A DNA stretch of 64,000 nt from Malacoraja senta. Lineage: Eukaryota. Under the pieces are notes generated by a model. That model was not told where the DNA came from. It saw only the letters and a program-made list of their open reading frames with translations, and searched no databases. Shown piece after piece: positions 12,236 through 58,700 of the stretch (position 1 is its first letter; each line of letters begins with the position of its first letter). The stretch covers positions 9,176,001-9,240,000 of the forward strand of contig CM075980.1 of the NCBI GenBank assembly GCA_038087875.1, given 5' to 3'. Position numbers and translations under genes: made by a program.

Positions 12236-14581
12236 GAGGATTATGTTATACTTGATAATGTGCAAGTGAGCCAGCAGCCTACATCAATGTAAAAAAATAC
12301 CTCGTGAATTGTGAATTACCACAGGCTGCTTGACAGTATGTCAGCTATTTTGGGAAGATGGCAACTTGCCCAGATCCTCGCTGTGAATTGCCCTTTAATC
12401 TCTTTACAGACATTTTTGTCCAGAGGTTGATGTTGTATGTACCCTCTTAAAGTTGTGATTTATTGTCAATGACTGTCATTCAACCTCTGGCCCAGTAAAG
12501 GAATTAAAAGCCTGTGGTCTTATTACTTCAAAATCAGCTGGAGTTTAAAACAAAGTTGAATGTTTAAAATGTTAAAAAAAGGTTTTCGTGTTTTTAAACT
12601 TCATGATTGTTGAAATATGCCCCTTTTATCACCCTCCTTGGAGTTCTGGTATATTTTTCCATCTTTGTACCACATAGGATACATTCTTGGTCTCACTGTT
12701 CACTGAGAATCCAGATGCTTTGTTGCCCTCTCTGCAATTAGCAGTTTGCAGTTTCAGCAGTTGCAAAGCTAAATATATTTCAGCCAAAGGTGCAGAAACA
12801 CATCTAACTAATTTGGAATGCCCTAGGTTATTCTGCATCAGCACATTCCATCTCAGCACAATTTGAGCTGAAAGCATTTAGGAAATCAGTCAAGCTTCCT
12901 TTTGTATTTCTAATTCCACTTTATTTCTTGAACTTGTTTAGTGAGATCGAGCCCAGTATAGTTATACAGCAAAACAAGAAAGTGTTACCCGAGAGGAGTT
13001 CTGTAATGGGCCATCACGGATATACTGGAAAAGGCTATGCTTATTTATGCAAATTACTATATATAATATACCTGGAAAATTCGAAGAGATCTTTCAGTTA
13101 AAATAGTCAATAGTTGGCCAGGGTACAAAATTTAATTTAAAAAAAAAGACAAAGTGCTGGAGTAACTCAGCGAGTCTGGCAGCATTTCTGGCGAAGATGC
13201 TCCAGAGATGCTGCTTGACTCACGGAGTTACTCCAGCATTTTTGTGCCTTTTTAAAATAAACCAGCACCTGCAGTTCCTTGTTTCTCCATTCTGAGTTTA
13301 ATATATTATTTCCATTTTGAGAGGTCGAATTGAATTGTCTCTCTAATCACGTCTTTTTTCCAGTTCATTTATGTTGTTTTATCACATTATATTACCTAAA
13401 TGAATTGAAATTATGGGAATAGAGGAGCGGCGAAGGAATATATTGAGAGTTTTTCTACCATGGCAGCACTGCAAGATTTCACAATAGGTTGAGTTAATTT
13501 AAGTTTATAATGACCATTGTGTGCCTCATGCCTGCTTATTATGCATTGGGAATAATATAATTACGTGGGAGGTATTAATGAACGTTAGTAGATTGGTCAA
13601 AGCTGTTCCTTGTGTGCTATGACACAGGAAAGGGTAAGATTCATCCTTTGGACCGATGACAATGGTAATGTGATTATTAATACTCGCATTCTAGATAGAT
13701 TTTCTCACTGGGATTAAGGATTCTACTGTTACATTGAATTTAGATTTTCCATTGGATCCCCACATAAATGTTGAAGTAATAACAGAGTGTTAATTGCTTG
13801 CTGAAGGCTGCAGTAAATTCAGGTTAGGTGGTATGATAAATATTTTTAGTGAGTTGCTGCATTTCTGTTCTGACGTGGCATATTTTCCAAAAACTAATTA
13901 TTCACCCTTCTTAGGCCTGGTGTCATGAGAAAAAAATGAGTTTTATGCAAAAAAAGGTGTAAGAATTTTATTTGTAAGGAGTCATCAAATGAGAATTTGT
14001 TATTAAATAACTGACATTCTAAAGGGATTGATGGACCAGAGAGATGTAGCTTCTGTGAAACAACACGCTTATGCATCCTAAAGTTTCTTATTAAAGAGAG
14101 AGTACAAAATTAAAACAGTGGAATGTTATCTTTAGTTTTGGATGCTTTTCTTCGAAAAGCAATTTAAAGTTTTGGAGAGGACATTCACTAATATTCTAAT
14201 TAGGATGAGGAACTTTAATGAGGAAATAGAAAGATTCTTTCTATCGGGAAAATAAGTTAAAATGAAATATCAACATTTTTCGATTGAGTGGTTGTAATAA
14301 ATTAACTCATCAGTGTTTCCAGCATTTCCATCTTTATTTCATGCAGTGGCTTATTAGAGTATCAATGCCCTCTGAGGCATGGATTCACAATATTATTATG
14401 TGAAGTGGTAAATGTTTGAAAAATAATGTATTTTAAAGATTCTGCGGAAAATAAGACTACAGATAGCTGTTTCAGAGAGCTGATATGAATAATAGGATAA
14501 AGGGCATTTTGTTTTGCACAACATTGCAATGTAATAACAATTACGTCTCTATAACATATTTATCCTTACTTTTTCTCTTAG

Positions 14582-27360: not shown

Positions 27361-27565
27361 TTACAACTTGCCTTAGGAGCAAATGTATGGGTAAATCTCG
27401 CACTGTTATGACTTGAAATTTATCAGCGTTACAAGACTTGTTTGTGAACTTTATTTTTAAAGTAGTTACATTCTGAATTTGATTGTGGGCATTGAACTCT
27501 GTTTCGAGTGTTTTGTGGTTTGTTGCAGTCCTGTGTAATGCTGACCAGTTTGGTCTCCTTTTCAG

Positions 27566-27713
27566 TCCGGCATCTGCTGCGTCTCCAGTGGGTGGGCTTA
27601 CCTCTCAGCGCGGCACTCCAAACCAACAACAGGCACGCATATCTGCATCCTCAGCAACCCGTGAACTTGATGAATTAATGGAATCACTCTCTGAGTTCAA
27701 GGTTCACGGCAAT
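27566..27713 (+). CDS. PXN: Paxillin exon 6 (LD4)
   Basis: Acceptor ctccttttcag; ...QQQARISASSATRELDELMESLSEFKVHGN; donor AAT|gtgagt, with a weaker in-frame alternative AAG|gttcac after 27701. Confidence 0.94.
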
Positions 27714-28695
27714 GTGAGTGCAATCAGATTTTTGCCTTTATCTGAGCCCATTAATTGAAATCACGAGCCCGATGAAAGCATTTGCCTCATTGGCAACTGT
27801 GCATTTATCTATGCTGCTAAGGTGGTGTAACAAGCAGGAAATGCTTCTTGTCAAAGAAATGGGAAAGTGGTCAGGAAAATAATCTTGGAGAAAATATCTG
27901 AAATTAGTCTTGTGTGGTTATTTACTGAAGCAAAGTGTTACTAAAATACTATATGAAAAATGCACCATCTAGATCTCCCTGTTGGAAAATAGTCAGGAAT
28001 ATTTTACCTTCCTATGAAGAGAATATGTTGGATGCAGAAGCTTCATAAAATTATTGTGTTATAACTGGAGTTCGCATTGGAAAAGTAGTCAATGTATTGG
28101 GTTTTCGTTACTATCTTTATATCAGTGCTTTTTCAAGATTACTATCTGGCTTGAAATCAGATGAACTATTAAAAGTATTTGTATGGGAAATCGTGCTGTA
28201 CTTTTTGCACAGATCACTTTTTTAGATAACGGGGGTAACACAGGTGAGCAAATAGTAAAGAGGGATACCAATAATGCAAATACAGATTGGATGGAAAATG
28301 CATATCAAGAGATGTAAACTTGAGGTGAGATAAATATACTTGTGACATTGGAGTTGTGTGTTGTAGCATGGGATGTGAGCTGTGGGGAAAACAGACATAC
28401 AGTGATCATGTATGAGATATTGATTAATCACAGTTGCCAGTTTGGATGGAATGGGATAGCGTTGGGTGTTGGAGGAATGAATTTGTGCGAGTAGCTGAGA
28501 ATCATGTGCTGGATGGATGATGAATATTAGAGAAATTTGGTTGTTGGTCAGGCAAGGCAGATATTGAATAATAAGATAAATGGAATTGGTATGAAACTGA
28601 AATAAATAATTTAAATCTTTATTTATTTCCTACCTTATTTGTTTTTTTTTATCATTTTTTCTATTCTTTCTGTCACTTTTCCTTCCTCAATTTAG

Positions 28696-29676
28696 GCTGG
28701 TACTATAAGTCCTATAAGTTTTGAATCAGATGAAAAGCAGAAAACATCTACTCCAAATACTCTGCTAGTGTCTGTTCTTACCCAATCTCCCATATCTCCA
28801 CCAACATCTCAGATGCTCTTATCTGTGCCTTACAATTCCCAGATTATTCCTAAAGGTACATGCTTGCCCTCTCCACTACCAAGAACCCACAGTCCTCTGG
28901 AACTGCTGCACATTGACGAGGAGCCTGGTACAGCACAACCATATCTATCTGCATTATCTAATCTTGCAAATTCATCACTTCACCGACCAGTGGTGCATCC
29001 ATCTGTCAATGTAAATTCAAAACTAGACACCAATGTTCCTCTGGCAGGAATGTCACCCTATTTTAAATCTCCAGAGCCATATATCACCACGCTCAGGGAC
29101 GTGCAGAAAACTGGAAATAAAAAAGAATCTATTGACAGTGAAATGCTGTCAAATGCTTTAAATACCGCAAAAAAAGATTCTAAATCCGCACTGACCTCAA
29201 GTCGTGGATTGGAGGATGTTGATAAATCCCTGATTACAGACTTTTCTGGGATCAATGAAGCCTTAGATAAGCTGCTGTCCTTTTACCATGAGGCTGAGCT
29301 AGTTGAGCCCCTGGACACCAAGCAACATGTCCTTGAATCGAAAGTGGCATCTGTGGAGAAACCATCAGTGTGTTTTCCTACGACAGAGCGTTCCTCCTTG
29401 CAATTGGAAACAAATGAGAAACAGAATATTAAACAAGCAGCCAAGCCTCGGGGAGAAAATTCAACAGAATTATCTAGTCCAAAGAAGATGCATGAAAAAG
29501 CAGCGCAACTAACAACACAGCAGCAGCAAGAACAAGGCAGGGAAATGGCAGTGGAACAAAATAAAGTGAACAGTTGTTACAAGTATCATCAAACAAATGA
29601 GAAAGCAGAAGAAGAGAAGTTTGATTTGCCTCCAGTTCAAATACTCACAGTGGAACGGATTTCTGCCTCTCGTCAG
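28696..29676 (+). CDS. PXN: Paxillin long-isoform alternative exon A (327 codons, Ser/Pro/Glu-rich)
   Basis: Very long polypyrimidine tract and tttag acceptor; 981-nt open frame in phase 0; ends TVERISASRQ, resembling the human long-isoform ERISTSGQ (recalled); putative donor CAG|gcaggc. Confidence 0.8.
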
Positions 29677-30669
29677 GCAGGCAGAAAGCTTGAATGTTGA
29701 ATGCTTTGTAGAGATTTGCTGCATGAACACCTTTGCATGGTCAGGAGAGCAATAAATACAATGTTTAAAATACTGTTGCCAGCTTTATACATCTAACAAT
29801 ACCCATTTTAATGGCATTATTGGTAGATATTTTGTGGAAGTGGCGGTGTGATGAACACTGAAGTGATTGCAGTACTTTCTAATCTCATTAATAAGGCAAA
29901 GTCTGTTGACACTGACACTTTTAATTATTACCATGGACCGCCTGATATGCACTCTGGAACAGGCTATATATATATATATATTCTTGGCACTAGGACATAT
30001 GGTTCAAAAGGCAGAAAAAGCATTTCTCAGTGCAAGTTAAATTATTTGGCACCATTTGATTGTAATTATGCACTTTATGGGAAGCAGACAAATAAAAAAC
30101 CTTGTATAATGCACAAGATCTGACCTCAGGAGGCCCATTGACATCATGCCAGAGATCACTTTGATATGCCATTGGCTCCCCTCAAATTGCATCTTTTGGA
30201 TTTGTTTCCAAGCCAGTATGTTGTGGAATTCATAACATCCTAGCCTTTAACAGGATTTGATTAGAAGGGTAAAACACAAAGTGCTGGAGGAGTTCAGTGG
30301 GTCAGGCAGCACCTATGGAGGGATTGGACAGACGGCGTTTTGGGTCAGGAACTTCTTCAGACCCTTCTTGATTAGAAGGGTTGTCATTATATTAAGAGAA
30401 ATGGAAGAGTTACGCCATAAGAGCCTTTTTGCCTGGACCTTAATACCTTCATAGCTGCCTCACGTTTATGTGCATTAACACTAAAAAATGTGCACCTTTT
30501 CTGTGAACTTGTACAGCATCGTACATGGAAATTTTCCAATTTAACTTGAGACTGCATGATAACTGATTTGTTGAGTGAAATTACTGCATGTGAAAGGTGT
30601 ATCGGTGTAAGTGCTTCTTGTTTGCTCTCAGATCTGTGGTTTCACTATGCAATCTTCCCTGTGGTGCAG

Positions 30670-30933
30670 ATGAAATCTCTTATTAAGAGGACAAAGCATT
30701 CTATGAACGTGCACCCGATGTACCGTGAGGACTTACCACGTCGAAAGTTTGGACCCGTCATATTTAACAAAAACGTGTCACAAGATAGACTTATTGAAGA
30801 ACTGCACAGCAAGCTAGGAATTGAGAAGAAGGAACCCAAGAATAGAAAAGTAGATGACTGGCTGACAGAGGGGTTGATCATCACCTCAATGCCTGTCAGG
30901 AAACATCAGGAAGGAGGTCATATTGTTGAGAAG
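30670..30933 (+). CDS. PXN: Paxillin long-isoform alternative exon B (88 codons)
   Basis: Acceptor gtgcag; MKSLIKRTK..VHPMYRE..SQDRLIEELHSKLGI..DWLTEGLIIT..GGHIVEK resembles the human long-isoform HPMSRE..SQERLIAELQGRLGI..DWLTEGV (recalled); donor AAG|gtagct. Confidence 0.88.
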
Positions 30934-31934
30934 GTAGCTAGGGGAAAGCATGAACTGTTGTTACAAAGAATTGCATGAAGATTTGATGCAAAAAGAAAAC
31001 CTATCTTAATAACTACTGCATGGATTGTTTAACACTTTTTCAAGATTCTAATCTTTAGGTTCAGTTGGCAATGCTCTAGCTTGAACAGGAATGAGCCCAT
31101 TGCAATTAAGCTGAAATATTGGCTACTATGAGATTATTTGCTTCAGAAAGATAGAAAGTAGAGAATGTTGTGCTTGATTTGATGGTAATCGTGCTGTGTC
31201 ATTGTAGCTACACTTGGATTGTATCGTTGTGCTCACCCATGGATGTATGTAGACTGCAGTTGGGGCGAATTGCAGATGTTTCTCGTCACTTTGTGCTACT
31301 CATTGCTCTCACAAGTTTAAGTTTCCCATTTTGCAAAAGTGCATAACAAGTTTTGGAGCATGTTTTTAGGGGATTGTGACACTTTGTGATATTTTGTGGG
31401 TTTGCTTAAAGGTTGTCCAGTTTATTTGTATTGTTGCGTGGTCTGCATGCATATTTCAATTATTTTGTTATTTTGGAGACATTAGCTCTGCGTAATTGTT
31501 TGCAGCTAATGTCCACATATTGGATATATGTGGCATAAAATTGGTGATTATGCATCCATCATTTTCCATAGTAATAATTAGATTTTAAGTTTTTTGTTCT
31601 GTCAATCTATGACATGCCAAGGTTTTGCCATTGGCTGGAAAGCTAAAACTAACCTTTGTTTGCAAATGACGCAGCTAAATGGTCCATAAGATCTGACTGC
31701 CCTTGCGCTATCAATTATAACTTGTGTTTGAAGATTGCAGTAAGCTTTAAGATTTCTCTGATTGTACATTGCACATTCCTTGAGTGTTGCTGAGCTCTGA
31801 TTCCCCCCCCCCCCCCCATCAAACCGTTTGCCCAATAGCTTAAAGCATGATGCACTTTGGCCTGTATAAATAAAAAAATATCCCTTAAGTATGTCAGCTT
31901 CTTAAAACTAAAGCTGCTGTATGTTTCTCTCCAG

Positions 31935-32567
31935 ATAATAATCACTCCAGAACCTCCTTCTTCAAAGGGTTCTACTCCATCACCCTGTCCTCCTTCACCC
32001 TCTCCCCCTATAAAACAGTGCCAAGAACAAAAGAAAAAAGGACTGATAGACGTCACACTTACACCACCTCCACCTGAGCGTTTCCCACCCTCACTTGCTG
32101 TACCTTCACCACCTCCCCTTCCTGTGCCTTTCCCACCTCCTCTCCCTGAACCTTCCCCAGCCCCTCTCTCTAAGCCTTCTCTGCCGCCTCTCCCTGAGCC
32201 TTCCCTCCCTCCTCCCCCTCTACCTCGCCCACCACCTCTACTTCTGCCCTCCTCATCAACTGCTTCCTCCCCATTATCTTCCATTCGCCTAGGATCTCAT
32301 TCTGCACCTCAGTGGAATATTTCATCTGATAAAAATGAAAAACTGCCTGTCCTTCCAACAGCAGTTCTTGCCCCCGTGACCCCATTAGAATACACTTCGC
32401 TACCAGAACACCATCCACGTTCCTCCTCTCTACCTGTCGTACAGACCACTGTTGTACGCGCTGAGCCTCTGCCATCTCTATCTGCATCTCCCAGAATCAT
32501 GATGTCAATAGCTTGTCAAACCGATGGTGAAGTCAGTGATGAAGGCACTCTACTTGTTCGATCACAG
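31935..32567 (+). CDS. PXN: Paxillin long-isoform alternative exon C (211 codons, proline-rich)
   Basis: Acceptor tttctctccag; phase 0; polyproline repeats followed by MMSIACQTD (human MRSVGCQTD, recalled); putative donor CAG|gcatgg, after which the sequence becomes AT-rich intron. Confidence 0.8.
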
Positions 32568-34055
32568 GCATGGAGTATTCTATCTTTAATATTTATAATT
32601 TTTGAAATCTATTTCATTTATAAAATAATCCTGAAGTTTCATCTTCATTTTCATATCCTTTGTGTACTTTGCTCAGTTTGGAACTACATAATCTTTTTAA
32701 ATAAGAAAATACTTGTAAGTATCCTGACATGTAGAATTGTTGCAGAAGGACATTTCTCTATGTTTAACTATAATTCCAGCATGAAACTATTGACCCATTT
32801 TGATGTTCACTTGCCACTATTATGCAGATCACCATGGATTATGATGACTGCCGTGGTAAGTGTAATTAAACTTGACTGTTGGCAGGAAATTTACATATTG
32901 ATTATGTGTAAAAGGGAGCTGGCTGCTTTCAGTCTAAATGTGCCAATAAAGAGTATAGTTATATATATTTTTGAAGGTCAGAATAGAATTTGCTTGAGTT
33001 GGATTCCTTGATTGCCCAATAAATTGCATCGTATTACATAGTAATATACTCGCAACAATGAGAGGCCCAGATGTGATCCTTGAGTTTCTGATTTACATCA
33101 ATGTATTAGATTCAAATGTTAGTCAACTTTGAAGTTATTTCACTAGCTATTCATTTAAGATGTTACATGAAAGTACATATTGGCTCTAATAATCTTTAAC
33201 TACAAGTGTCAGTTAGTAAAGGCACAGCTGGTGGTAGTTATCAGATAAAACGGTCAATATAATCATTTTTTAATAACAAATCTGTATGTTTGCCATCCCT
33301 GAGGAAAAAAGTACCCAGCATCTGAAATTAATGATTTGGTGCATGGAACAATTACATTAAAAAATTGTTAAATGCATTAAATACACTTAGTAGGGTACAC
33401 TAAGTATTGTTTTGTTTGATATAAAATTACATTATCAAGCTATTTGTTTTATGAAATACTTTCCTCACAATCTAACTGCTGCATGTTGATATTTAATACT
33501 GTAGATTTCTGTCAATGGGCGTATAGTTTTCTTCTCAAAAGCTCATATGTCTGTTTGTACACAGAAGTTGCGTGTTTGTTGCAATTTTCATTTTCTCTGA
33601 AGGTATGTGCAGTGCTTATCCGTCTTTCAAGAAGTCAGGTACTCATTGTTCTCTGCATGCTGCTTCAGTTGTCAAACTAGAGTCAGCTATTAGTACTATT
33701 ACTTAATTTCTTGGACGTGGACCTTGTACAGTACAGTACTTAATTTCTTGGATGTGGACCTGGCGATCAATAGAATGGGCCATTCGCAGTCTCAAATCTT
33801 TCTTCATTCATTCTGTTTATCGCTTGAAAACCATAATCTTTTCTATTTAATATTAAAAATGAACTTGAAATGGAACGTGCTTCAAGTTTTGGAAACCTGT
33901 ATATGCCATAGAATGCCCTTGCAGATTTATCTGCAAAAAGATGCAATGCAGATGTTGTTTGGAATGAAGCTTACAATGGTTACTGATTTGTTTTGAGTTA
34001 CTATATCATAACTACCTGCACAATCAAATAACTATCAAAAATAAGTCATTACATG

Positions 34056-34281
34056 TGTAGGAAAGACCTGCAGTTGCTGGTTTAAATTGAAGATAGACAC
34101 AAATGCTGGAGTAACTCAGCAGGACAGGCAGCATCTCTGGAGAGAAGAAATGGGTGACGTTTCTGGTCGAGACCAATCTTTGGTCGCTCCAGTCTAAAAA
34201 AGGGCGGGTCCCGAAACATCACCCATTCTTTCTCTCCAGAGATGCTGCCTGTCCCGCTGAGTTATTCCAGCATTTTGTGTC
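34056..34281. mobile_element. Inverted pair of Penelope-derived short elements
   Basis: Two oppositely oriented copies flanked by a 14-bp repeat TAAGTCATTACATG (34042-34055 and 34282-34295). Confidence 0.8.
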
Positions 34282-35603
34282 TAAGTCATTACATGATAAT
34301 TTGGTACATCTAGGTAATAGTCTGGGAGACCACTCATTGATTAAATAATTCTGAAGGGCAGAGGCAAAGAGGTGATCAAATTCCTAAGAGCAGCAAGTAT
34401 TGGATGCAGATTTTTTACAGTTTTATCCCATGCATGAAATTTTTTGGGGGGTTTTGTTTTGTATCTATATATTATACTTGAATTATTGAAAGATATTGAG
34501 AAAATTATATTGCTTTTCTTGTAGGTTGATTTGAGATCAGCCAGAAATTAGATGTGTACTACTTCAGAAGCTATGTTTTTTTTTACCAACAGCAAAAAAT
34601 CCTTAAAAGATTTAAAGGTAAATTAATGTTAACTTTGAAGTATCATATTGGTTGCATCAAATTAGTTGAAAGCTTTTGAAGATTATTGGGAAAAGGGAAT
34701 GATTAGGAATGGAATGAGTAGCAACCTGTGTGAATTACAAATTTCAAATGAGCAGAGGTTAGAAGATTAAAGTTGGGAAAGATGGTGGTAGCTGAGTAGG
34801 AGAAGTAGGATGTACAAAACCTAACAAGAAGATGAGAATTTGATCATTATATTGTGGGGTTTGTTTCTTTCTGATTCCAGCCACAGTAAGAATGAACCAT
34901 GTTGAATTATGTACACTGCTTGGTATTTAATTCCCTGTGAACCAAATTTGTGTGTTTTAAGTACTGAACTGGCAAAGTCATCAGCATGGAACAAACTCAG
35001 TCTTGAGCTCCATTTCAGTGAGGTCACGTGACTGTACAGCTGGTGGTTGGACACATAGCCCACGGGTGCTAATGACGTGTCTGTTCAACATTAAAATGTG
35101 CTGAATGTTAACCGGTGTGGGATGCTGGTTAATTTATCCGTCGTAAGCCCAAGCAAAGAGAATGCCGTTTAAAAAAATGTTAGGGCAGAACTTTGTCACT
35201 GTAACTGCAATTGGAAATGTTAAATACTACCAACAAAGAACTAATTACCTTTACTTTGATAATCTTGGTTAACATATAAAAAATAATTTTTCAGTTAATT
35301 CGGAGCTACATGGGAGTATGTTATACAATTTCCTTGTATTGTAGATAGAGTCTCGACCTGAAACGTCACACATTCCTTCTCTCCAGAGATGCTGCCTGTT
35401 ACTCCAGTTTTTTGTATCTATCTTCGGTTTAAACCAGCATCTGCAGTTCCTTCTTACACATTCCTTGTATTATAGATGTGCTACTGTTCCCTTCAATATG
35501 TTTTGCATGTTTGATTTTTTTTTACTCTACCTGTTTCTATAGTTTTCTCAAACTTTTTTCATTCTGTTTATTACATTTGTCTCTCCTGTTGAATCATTTT
35601 TAG

Positions 35604-35672
35604 CCAATCAGCCCAGGTCGTGCTACCAAACTGCTGGGTTCCCCATTGCATAAAGGAGATCATCTGGGACTG
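35604..35672 (+). CDS. Candidate 69-nt in-frame exon (PISPGRATKLLGSPLHKGDHLGL) at the position of the beta/gamma insert
   Basis: Long pyrimidine-rich run ending ttttag; 23 codons with no stop; weak donor CTG|gtagat; phase 0/0. Confidence 0.35.
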
Positions 35673-36129
35673 GTAGATCCATTTGCCCTTCCCCCACTGC
35701 CGTGCCCACCCCCTCCTTCATTTTATGGACAACAACAAAAACCAAAAGCAAATGTGTGTATATGAATGAACCAATGGTTCAAATTGAAACAGTAAATGAA
35801 AGCTGTTATCCACAAAGTTTAATATTTCATATGTTCTCTATGATTGCCTTTTTTAAGTAATAGACTGATAATAACAGTAATTACATAAGTGTGGTGTAAT
35901 AATCTGTCAATTTTCTTTGTTCTCAATTGTTAATACTGTGTGATTTTAGGAGAAAAAAATTGGGTTAGATATTTGGATGTCAAGTAAATGAATCACAATT
36001 AAGTGTTTATTATTTTGCCCTGCAGTAATCTCATTACAAGTATTTTGTTTGGTTGCAGTAGGGTAACTTGAATTTTTCTATTATATAATAGTTTCTTAAT
36101 TTCTTTCTAATAAAATGAAGCAAAACAAA

Positions 36130-39904: not shown

Positions 39905-40087
39905 ATGATGACCCAGTCAGGGTCCAAAGGAAAGCAAGGAGGTCCTTCCACTGTAGCAGGTCCACAAAAAGCCGGAAGCCAACTGGATAATATGTTGGAT
40001 GAATTACACGTTGGGCTGAATAAATTGGGAGTTGCGACTGTAGCAAAAGGAGTATGTGCTGCTTGCAAGAAACCTATAGCCGGACAG
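39905..40087 (+). CDS. PXN: Paxillin exon (LD5 and start of LIM1)
   Basis: Acceptor gatag; MMTQSGSKGK...GSQLDNMLDELHVGLNKLGVATVAKGVCAACKKPIAGQ; donor CAG|gtgaga; 183 nt. Confidence 0.96.
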
Positions 40088-40389
40088 GTGAGAACTATCA
40101 GGAATAAAAGTGATCTTCATTATTTTCTGAGATACTCGTTTTTGTTGGATGTTATAGATTTTCTTGAGCCAATTTTTTTCCATGAAACGATACTGTTCAA
40201 TAAAGACTATTTGTATAGTGAAATACTTTTTTATTGAAAGAAGGGTATGAAAGACAATAAATGTTTCGAACATGTTTAATGTGTATTGATGCAAATACAA
40301 TGCAGCTTATTGACACCTTGATATCTGTTCTTTTCATCAGAAAGGTTTGTACTGTATTTTTCACATTTCCTTATGAAAACAAAACGTGG

Positions 40390-55769: not shown

Positions 55770-58700
55770 CTCCGTTCTTGGTGACGTATATAAATGACTT
55801 AGACATAAATGTGGATGGGTTGGTAAGTTTGCAGGCCACATCAAGATTGCTGGCATCGCGGACAGTGAATAAGGCTGTTGAAGTATACAGTGGCATGTGC
55901 AGTAGACAATAGGTGCAGGAGTAGGCCATTCGGCCCTTCGAGCCAGCATTCAATGTGATCATGGCTGATCATCCCCAATCAGTACCCCGTTCCTGCCTTC
56001 TCCCCATATCCCCTGACTCGGCAATTTTTAAGAGCCCTATCTAGCTCTCTCTTGAAAGCATCCAGAGAACCTGCCTCCACCGCACTCTGAGGCAGAGAAT
56101 TCCACAGACTCACCTCTCTCTGTGAGAAAAAGTGTTTCCTCGTCTCCGTTCTAAATGGCTTACTCCTTATTCTTAAACTGTGGCCCCTGGTTCTGGACTC
56201 CCCCAACATCGGGAGCATGTTTCCTGCCTCTAGCGTGTCCAAACCCTTAACAATCTTATATGTTTCAATGAGATTCCCTCTCATCCTTCAACTCCAGAGT
56301 GTACAAGCCCAGCTGCTCCATTCTCTCAGCATATGACATAGAAACATAGAAAATAGGTGCAGGAGTAGGCCATTCGCCCTTCGAGCCTGCACCGCCATTC
56401 AATATGATCATGGCTGATCATCCAACTCAGTATCCTGTACCTGCCTTCTCTCCATACCCCCTGATCCCTTTAGCCACAAGGGTCACATCTAACTCCCTCT
56501 TAAATATAGCCAATGAACTGGCCTCAACTACCTTCTGTGGCAGAGAATTCCACAGATTCACCACTCTCTGTGTGAAAAATGATTTTCTCATCTCGGTCCT
56601 AAAAGACTTCCCCCTTATCCTTAAACTGTGACCCCCTTGTTCTGGACTTCCCCAACATCGGGAACAATCTTCCTGCATCTAGCCTGTCCAACCCCTTAAG
56701 AATCTTGTAAGTTTCTATAAGATCCCCCCTCAATCTTCTAAATTCTAGCGATTACAAGCCGAGTCTATCCAGTCTTTCTTCATATGAAAGTCCTGCCATC
56801 CCAGGAATCAGTCTGGTGAACCTTCTCTGTACTCCCTCTATGGCAAGAATGTCTTTCCTCAGATTTGGTGACCAAAACTGTACGCAATACTGCAGGTGTG
56901 GCCTCACCAAGACCCTGTACAACTGCAGTAGAACCTCCCTGCTCTTATACTCAAATCCTTTTGCTATGAATGCTAACATACCATTCGCTTTCTTCACTGC
57001 CTGCTGCACCTGCATGCCTACTTTCAATGACTGGTGTACCATGACACCCATATCTCGTTGCATCTCCCCTTTTCCTAATCGGCCACCATTCAGATAATAA
57101 TGACAGTCCCGCCATCCTGGGAATTAACCTTGTAAACCTACGCTGCACTCCCTCAATAGCAAGAATGTCTTTCCTCAAATTAAGGGACCAAAACTGCACA
57201 CAATACTCCAGGTGTGGTCTCACTAGGGCTCTGTACAACTGCAGAAGGACCTCTTTGCTCCTATATTCGATTCCTTTTGTTTTAAAGGCCAACATGCCAT
57301 TCGTTTTCTTCATTGCCTGCTGTACCTGCATGCTTACTTTCATGGACTGATGTACAAGGACCCCCAGATCCCGCTGTACTTCCCCTTTTCCCAACTTGAC
57401 GCCATTTAGATAGTAATCTGCCTTCCTGTTTTTGCTACCAAAGTGGATAACCTCACATTTATGTGCATTAAACTTCATCTGCCATGCATCTGGCCACTCC
57501 CACAACCTGTCCAAGTCACCCTGCATTCTCATAGCATCCTCCTCACAGTTCACACTGCCACCCAGCTTTGTGTCTGCCATTCTGAAAGCGACCCGTTAAT
57601 CCCTACTCTTTGTTTCCTGTCTGCCATCCACTTCTCTATCCATGTCAGCACTCTACCCTCAATACCATGTGCCCTAATTTTGCCCACTAATCTCCTATGT
57701 GGGACCTTATCAAATGCTTTCTGAAAGTCCAGGTACACTACATCCACTGGCTCTCCCATGTCCATTTTCCTAGTTACATCTTCAAAAAATTCCAGAAGAT
57801 TAGTCAAGCATGATTTCCCCTTCGTAAATCCATGTTGACTCGGACCGATCCTGTTACTGCTATCCAAATGTTCGGCTATCTCATCTTTTATAATTGACTC
57901 CAGCATCTTCCCCACCACCGATGTCAGGCTAACTGGTCTATAATTCCCTGTTTTCTCTCTCCCGCCTTTCTTAAAAAGTGGGATAACATTAGCTACCCTC
58001 CAATCCACAGGAACTGATCCTGAGTCTATAGAACATTGGAAAATTATCACCAATGCATCCACAATTTCTAGAGCCACTTCCTTAAGTACCCTGGGATGCA
58101 AACCATCAGGCCCTGGGGATTTATCAGCCTTCAGTCCCATCAGTCTACCCAACACCATTTCCTGCCTAATGTGGATTTCCTTCAGTTCCTCCATCACCCC
58201 AGATCCTCTGGCCACTACTATATCAGGAAGATTGTTTGTGTCCTCCTTAGTGAAGACCGATTCAAAGTACCTGTTCAGTAGATCAACGACAGAATAGTTA
58301 ATTAAGCTTAATCTGAGCTAGTGCGACAAAGTACCCTTTCGGAAGTCGGATATAAAAGGAACTGGTTGATGGCAAAACACCTAACAGCACTGATGTGCAG
58401 AGAGATCTTGGGGAGAGGGCGAGTAGCTTATTGAAAGTGGCAACACAAGTAGAAAGTGGTAAATGCGTATGGCATGCTTACCTTCATTGGTTGCCGTATT
58501 GAATATCGAGTCAGGAAGTCATGATGCAGTATTTGGAGTATCGTGTGCAGTTCAGGTCGCCTCATTACAGGAAGGATGTGGAGGCTTTAGAGAGAGTGCA
58601 AAAGAGGTTAACCATAATGTTGCCTGGATTGGTGGGTTACAGCTACAAGGAGCAGTACAAAATTGTGATGTTTTCTCTGGAACACTGGAGGTTGAGGGGA

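Follow-up and report, generated by a model that had tools for sequence, protein, structure and literature searches.

What does a dense run of TGCATG hexamers do within the paxillin gene of a skate? The RNA form of this motif, (U)GCAUG, is bound in pre-mRNA by RBFOX splicing factors. From sites downstream of an exon these factors promote inclusion; from upstream sites the tendency is towards skipping (summarised in PMC11216089). The sequence analysed here, referred to throughout as the window, is a 64,000-nucleotide stretch of the Malacoraja senta genome (contig CM075980.1, positions 9,176,001 to 9,240,000), and its forward strand carries the paxillin (PXN) gene. The hexamers are concentrated among four optional exons, which we call A, B, C and D. 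These form a cassette between the exons encoding the LD4 and LD5 motifs and together add approximately 676 residues to the protein. We take the sense (U)GCAUG cluster to be a set of candidate RBFOX sites that probably govern inclusion of this cassette, a reading to which we assign a probability of about 0.7. The cassette itself is, as judged from its sequence, the orthologue of the extended paxillin (ePxn) cassette of mammals.

The initial annotation of this locus had listed twelve intronic TGCATG hexamers, at 29720, 29734, 30553, 30585, 30972, 31017, 31444, 33340, 33480, 33654, 34431 and 35504. All twelve are present, all are on the forward (sense) strand, and the exon map places every one of them in an intron. 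A thirteenth sense copy is found at 29489, inside exon A. Sense GCATG cores lacking the leading T also occur among the cassette exons, five of them as AGCATG (30947, 31357, 31844, 32778) or GGCATG (32567), and a sixth, AGCATG at 34983, is situated farther along the intron between C and D. When both strands of the 64-kb window were pooled, TGCATG showed no excess (53 observed, 51.7 expected from dinucleotide shuffles). Since an excess of sense copies is nevertheless present around the cassette, the signal is local and strand-specific. The 6.0 kb from 29489 to 35509 contain 13 sense copies, compared with 22 in the other 58 kb, against an expectation of 2.4 (Poisson p 1.6e-6); of all 4096 hexamers, TGCATG is the most enriched in this interval. 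In a scan statistic that took the best stretch on either strand, none of 1000 dinucleotide shuffles reached 13 copies in 6 kb or 8 copies in 2 kb. A count against a dinucleotide-matched background had been proposed as a check, and in this comparison the enrichment holds: for 29677-35509, 12 copies were observed where 3.15 +/- 1.8 are expected, and 0 of 2000 local shuffles reached 12. The earlier expectation of 1-2 copies per 5.8 kb was a uniform-composition value and has to be raised to about 2.4-3.1; the enrichment is therefore approximately 4-5-fold, which is still clearly real. Sense density amounts to 2.38 per kb in the cassette introns versus 0.24-0.53 per kb in other PXN introns, a difference of 5-10 times. 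Antisense copies in the cassette introns stay at the background level of 0.40 per kb (12 sense versus 2 antisense, binomial p 0.013), and no single-mismatch variant of TGCATG exceeds five copies in the cluster region.

The individual sites are listed below, with offsets counted to the start of the hexamer, which is one less than the offset of the GCATG core (for example +44 for a core starting at +45).

29720 and 29734, forward strand: two TGCATG at +44 and +58 after the exon A donor, proximal, downstream and of enhancer type.
30553 and 30585, forward strand: two TGCATG at -117 and -85 before exon B, with no conservation in the elephant shark (Callorhinchus milii).
30947, 30972 and 31017, forward strand: AGCATG, TGCATG and TGCATG at +14, +39 and +84 after the exon B donor, within a conserved intron block (30934-31038).
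31444-31449, forward strand: TGCATG in the palindromic TGCATGCA, mid-intron, with no conserved block around it.
31844-31849, forward strand: AGCATG at -91 before exon C; the elephant shark has GCATG at -106.
32567, forward strand: GGCATG spanning the exon C donor CAG/GCATGG (32568-32573).
33340, 33480, 33654 and 34431, forward strand: four TGCATG deep in the 3.0-kb C-D intron, outside repeats and outside blocks conserved in the elephant shark.
35504-35509, forward strand: TGCATG at -100 before exon D, just outside a conserved block that starts at 35543.

Pairs of TGCATG had been described directly downstream of A and B, and these are indeed found at +44/+58 after the A donor and at +39/+84 after the B donor, the latter pair accompanied by the AGCATG at +14. 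Such proximal downstream positions, within about 300 nt of an alternative exon, are those expected of RBFOX-type enhancers.

We then placed the cluster on a map of the gene. Using skate and elephant-shark paxillins as tblastn queries, paxillin exons were located from LD1 (14.6 kb; the first mapped exon is at 14578) to the last LIM exon (49.8 kb), and a Pfam search matched an open reading frame (ORF) near 27.6 kb to the Paxillin family at the LD4 motif. In Amblyraja and Heptranchias the corresponding genes extend over more than 100 kb. The cassette and the exons that border it are as follows.

27566-27713, forward strand: constitutive LD4 exon, ending ...EFKVHGN with donor AAT/gtgagt; supported by Pfam, by tblastn with Amblyraja and Callorhinchus paxillin, and by a contig spliced to exon A.
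28696-29676, forward strand: cassette exon A, the largest (981 nt, 327 codons), with a GC donor, CAG/GCAGGC, and one exonic TGCATG at 29489.
30670-30933, forward strand: cassette exon B, the best-conserved cassette exon (264 nt, 88 codons), with contig joints on both sides.
31935-32567, forward strand: cassette exon C (633 nt, 211 codons), proline-rich and ending with a ...SIACQTD... motif; supported by tblastn and a contig.
35604-35753, forward strand: cassette exon D (150 nt, 50 codons), ttttag/CCA...AAT/gtgtgt; supported by tblastn, with splice sites read from the sequence.
39905-40090, forward strand: constitutive LD5/LIM1 exon after the cassette, 98% identical to Amblyraja by tblastn.

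The initial annotation had recognised A, B and C, which stand, and was incomplete in that it missed the fourth exon, D, which we located via the longest Amblyraja isoform. The four-exon map with its two confirmed GC-AG introns is an addition of the present work. Exon A is 96% identical to Amblyraja radiata paxillin X5 and 36% identical to Callorhinchus by tblastn. In an exhaustive protein search it matched a Logan-assembled fragment (94% identity) whose 90% cluster includes Amblyraja radiata paxillin X5, a Scyliorhinus canicula protein, 'paxillin a X9' (47%), and two Callorhinchus milii proteins (39%), and this search returned no matches to exon A beyond cartilaginous-fish proteins. We accordingly take the gene to be that of a skate near to Amblyraja yet distinct from it. 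Exon B is 72% identical to Callorhinchus, and exon D is 92% identical to residues 972-1022 of Amblyraja X1 and 53% identical to Callorhinchus. A search of the cassette exons against Pfam gave no significant match. Two small in-frame length differences from close relatives were noted within the exons: a 24-nt segment of exon C (32442-32465; 8 codons, QTTVVRAE) is missing from Amblyraja and from DNA run X11, and the start of exon A carries a 9-nt tandem duplication (28700-28708) that is absent from the transcript in run X1.

Splicing of the cassette was examined in contigs of four public runs aligned over 27500-33400, a range that ends before exon D and the LD5 exon. Run X1 derives from a close relative, and run X11 is DNA of a relative. 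Contigs of run X1 join the end of the LD4 exon to exon A, join 29676 to 30670 with removal of a GC..AG intron (A to B), and join 30933 to 31935 with removal of a GT..AG intron (B to C); a further piece covering exon C (31933-32567) stops aligning exactly at 32567. Word depth in this run was 217-292 for the LD4 exon, 69-82 for A and B, 34 for C and 5-8 for the introns, and these steps are compatible with partial inclusion, word depth being a poor measure of it. Runs X9 and X10 contained all sampled words of exon A and gave almost no aligned contigs outside a repeat. Annotated isoforms of Amblyraja comprise A+B+C+D (X1-X3), A+B+D (X4) and A+B (X5), so that C is absent from X4 and X5 and D from X5, and for other elasmobranchs short canonical paxillins are annotated. 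The contig joints, the unequal depth, the Amblyraja isoforms and the short elasmobranch paxillins together establish that the cassette exons are real, are spliced as predicted and are optional.

To compare the sites between species we used the elephant-shark locus (L001), which contains the same cassette exons. The lineages of skate and elephant shark diverged, by our own estimate, about 400 million years ago. GCATG cores after exon A begin at +45 and +59 in skate and at +46 and +65 in elephant shark; those after exon B begin at +15, +40 and +85 in skate and at +15, +41 and +90 in elephant shark; and a core before exon C stands at -90 and -106, respectively. In the alignment the three cores after B are invariant and fall in a block whose conservation reaches about +105. 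Of the two after A, the first is aligned (TGCATGA in skate, GGCATGA in elephant shark), and the second is shifted by a small indel. Four of the five proximal GCATG cores are thus kept in register, versus perfect conservation of 13-18% of intron 5-mers in the same skate/elephant-shark alignments. By blastn, conserved non-coding sequence between the two species was confined to regions adjoining exons. More distant vertebrates were compared through the cod gene pxnb (L002) and the spotted hyena locus (L003). The 517-nt A-B intron of cod holds three sense and no antisense GCATG (0.6 expected, P 0.027), and the hyena has seven sense and no antisense copies at +76 to +623 after its large exon (1.4 expected, 0 of 300 shuffles). 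A sense-only GCATG cluster after the large exon is therefore common to all four species examined (skate, elephant shark, cod and hyena); exact site positions are common to the cartilaginous fishes only, the clusters of cod and hyena being unaligned. As a separate observation, the elephant shark has an extra cassette exon of 18 residues (VNTKFEFLRLTPPPAIEQ; L001 59864-59917) located 260 nt before its exon D; neither the skate window nor Amblyraja X1 showed a counterpart.

The mammalian cassette provides the experimental counterpart. In 2024, ePxn was described in mammals as an isoform containing a large exon 7 along with three exons of smaller size, which nearly double the mass of the protein; expression of this isoform is highest in skeletal muscle and heart (PMC11216089). 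During differentiation of rat H9C2 cells, ePxn rises alongside Rbfox1, and overexpression of Rbfox1 raises ePxn; in C2C12 cells Rbfox1 raises inclusion of exon 7 from a minigene, and GCATG-to-GACTG mutations at three of four flanking sites weaken this effect (PMC11216089). The minigene and motif-mutation test that had been proposed for the skate cassette has, in effect, already been carried out on its rodent orthologue. Our text search of the literature brought up no other primary study of ePxn, and none that dealt with animals other than mammals. Homology to ePxn was supported from several directions. Exon B can be aligned with the hyena protein from end to end (39% identity, E 2e-20). Exons A and C, each compared pairwise with the same protein, showed no significant match (E 0.67 for A). 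Exon C shares only an S-[IV]-[AG]-CQTD motif; this motif (32499-32525 in the window) is the sole recognisably kept part of exon C in elephant shark, cod and hyena, reading SIACQTD, SVGCQTE and SVGCQTD. When the elephant-shark cassette was used as the query, long paxillin isoforms were recovered from sharks, rays, coelacanth, amphibians, teleosts and one mammal, and it is through these isoforms that exon A, too diverged for pairwise detection, is linked to the mammalian cassette.

The skate and rodent (PMC11216089) cassettes are alike in residing in the same gene at the same place between LD4 and LD5, in comprising one large and three smaller exons, and in having sense GCATG cores in the intron after the large exon (seven in hyena, two proximal ones in skate). 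They differ in that the large exon of skate has diverged beyond pairwise detection, that its donor is GC in cartilaginous fishes and GT in cod and hyena, and that in skate the sites extend across three introns and their strongest conserved group follows exon B, not the large exon. The experiments on Rbfox1 dependence were done in rodent cells. Conserved UGCAUG elements flanking tissue-specific exons, as a class (Minovitsky et al. 2005, PMC548355, as cited in PMC11216089), resemble the skate cluster in their multiple sense copies, their proximal downstream placement and the retention of the motif in a diverging intron. They form a general class and not one locus, and the positional conservation seen here spans two cartilaginous fishes only. 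Another parallel is exon 19 of vinculin, which encodes metavinculin: like ePxn it is a muscle-enriched insert in a focal-adhesion protein promoted by Rbfox1 through flanking GCATG sites (PMC11216089), although it belongs to another gene and is a single small exon.

Homology to ePxn and conservation of the proximal cores support an RBFOX interpretation of the cluster, and a plausible mechanism can be outlined. The conserved sites after A (+44, +58) and after B (+14, +39, +84) would serve as intronic splicing enhancers: RBFOX proteins bound there would help the spliceosome to use the neighbouring 5' splice site, a weak GC donor in the case of exon A. Exons A and B would thereby be included where RBFOX is abundant, which in other vertebrates means muscle, heart and neurons. 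Sites farther away that lack conservation would probably raise local RBFOX occupancy, or may reflect lineage-specific turnover, and those upstream of B and D possibly modulate the choice of sub-exons. We infer from the mammalian orthologue that the conserved cores after A and B serve as RBFOX-dependent enhancers in skate and that Rbfox1 dependence, together with a bias towards muscle and heart, extends to this species, and likewise that the distal sites contribute to regulation. The initial proposal of an RBFOX-dependent, regulated cassette thus gains support from the motif- and strand-specific enrichment, the conserved proximal cores, the clusters in cod and hyena and the rodent experiments on the orthologue.

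Several observations weigh against this interpretation. Eight of the 13 hexamers (30553, 30585, 31444, 33340, 33480, 33654, 34431 and 35504) have no elephant-shark counterpart and lie outside conserved blocks, and part of the cluster may therefore be lineage-specific or neutral. Conservation of the motif in orthologous introns, which the initial annotation had named as a further check, accordingly holds for the five proximal cores and fails for the eight other hexamers. Cod pxnb lacks the GCATG triplet after exon B. GCATG shows no significant enrichment in the A-B intron when that intron is taken by itself (4 observed, 2.0 expected, P 0.16). Sites upstream of B and D would, by the usual RBFOX position map, favour skipping over inclusion. 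Finally, run X1, the source of the splice joints, is automatically labelled 'RNA? (probably DNA)'; we treated it as RNA because of its exact intron-skipping joints and its approximately 10-fold excess of exon over intron depth.

These observations bear on three other explanations. The cluster could be a product of chance, local base composition or repeats and have no function, as the absence of an excess over the whole window (53 versus 51.7) and the lack of conservation of most distal sites would allow. However, none of the 2000 local or 1000 scan-statistic shuffles reached the observed count, TGCATG heads the list of 4096 hexamers, the repeats at 30258-30454, 34053-34283 and 35350-35461 contain none of the motifs, and the proximal cores have persisted over the approximately 400 million years estimated above. 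Given the shuffles, the conservation of the cores and the strand and variant specificity, we regard this explanation as largely refuted and its truth as extremely improbable. A functional role of another kind, in which the hexamers are recognised by a different RNA-binding protein or act in the DNA itself, for instance as an intronic cluster of transcription-factor sites, draws on the fact that conserved intron blocks beside exons can carry many kinds of signal. It is nonetheless very unlikely to be correct: the 12:2 strand bias indicates an RNA-level signal, no single-mismatch variant is enriched, and UGCAUG is a well-defined RBFOX element whose orthologous mouse sites have been validated by mutation (PMC11216089).

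The third explanation keeps RBFOX as the regulator and replaces a simple on-switch with a mixed code. Only the five conserved proximal cores would enhance A and B; through the upstream sites of B (-117, -85) and D (-100), and through the GCAUG within the exon C donor, RBFOX would repress or gate individual sub-exons, yielding A+B, A+B+D and A+B+C+D. Such a code would fit the Amblyraja isoforms, which use C and D independently and A and B always together, as well as the depth of exon C in run X1, which is half that of A and B. It would also accord with the usual effect of upstream RBFOX sites, which favour skipping (PMC11216089), and with the retention of the CAG/GCATGG donor of exon C in skate, elephant shark and cod. 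Yet the upstream sites have no elephant-shark counterpart, and conservation of GCAUGG at the donor may simply reflect splice-site function. We consider the mixed code unlikely.

The donors of exons A and C deserve separate comment within the preferred reading, that of an RBFOX-dependent cassette. GC donors are weak and are often found beside regulated exons. Skate and elephant shark share an identical GC donor at exon A, and given its general weakness the enhancer pair 44-58 nt downstream offers a plausible route to RBFOX dependence. Exon C likewise ends in a GC donor, CAG/GCATGG, which itself contains GCATG and is the same in skate, elephant shark (L001 ~56597) and cod (L002 ~14044); at the corresponding position the hyena reads CAG/GCAGGC, and the donor annotated for hyena is a GT lying 12 nt downstream. 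Conceivably, RBFOX binds over the exon C donor (CAG/GCAUGG), competes with U1 small nuclear ribonucleoprotein (snRNP) and gates C apart from A and B, in an RBFOX-ePxn circuit with weak GC donors as sensitive points that would date to the ancestor of jawed vertebrates. We hold this proposal to be distinctly unlikely. If it were true, a single regulator could produce a graded set of long paxillin isoforms, with A and B switched on and C gated separately.

Two further features were seen at the exon A donor. The first ~14 nt of the following intron are identical in skate and elephant shark (gcaggcagaaagct), and conservation continues to about +40 (29677-29715; L001 53535-53574). Where the GC donor is left unused, the reading frame continues for seven codons to a stop (...RQAGRKLEC, then the stop codon), and the Logan-assembled ORF P0001 has exactly that end. 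This read-through end could represent an intron-retaining or truncated isoform, or merely a genomic contig.

Repeats were considered as carriers of the motif and were ruled out, no copy lying within any of the three repeats of the cluster region. One of them is a high-copy element:

30258-30454, unstranded: interspersed repeat in the A-B intron, with word depth of 10^4-10^5 in four runs (three related species), flanked by direct repeats of ttgattagaaggg.

The element resembles a SINE-type insertion and is no part of the regulatory cluster. The other two, 34053-34283 and 35350-35461, belong to a short repeat that the window contains at least 10 times, among other places at 16.9, 18.4, 11.2 and 52.5 kb; one copy, 34094-34283, is duplicated on itself in inverted orientation, as a MITE-like hairpin. 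At the start of the window, four sense TGCATG occur within 1.3 kb (212-1474), in or beside a retroelement-like ORF (654-1019); they precede the first mapped paxillin exon (14578) and have no relation to the cassette. Two neighbouring ORFs on the reverse strand (56951-58215), located downstream of paxillin, code for the reverse-transcriptase-like protein of a LINE element.

The skate cluster is the cartilaginous-fish counterpart of the published rodent splicing switch; the result is solid, and it does not reveal a new mechanism, motif conservation of this kind being already expected by specialists. What it supplies is a corrected four-exon annotation for this genome, five specific conserved cores singled out as targets for mutation, and attention to the conserved GC donor of exon C with its RBFOX core. 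Since the cassette and the positions of the proximal cores are common to skate and elephant shark, and clusters are present in cod and hyena, the comparison supports a conserved function of the little-studied ePxn insert, especially of exon B. The regulatory layout of muscle-type long paxillin, published only in 2024 for rodents, is therefore not a mammalian peculiarity.

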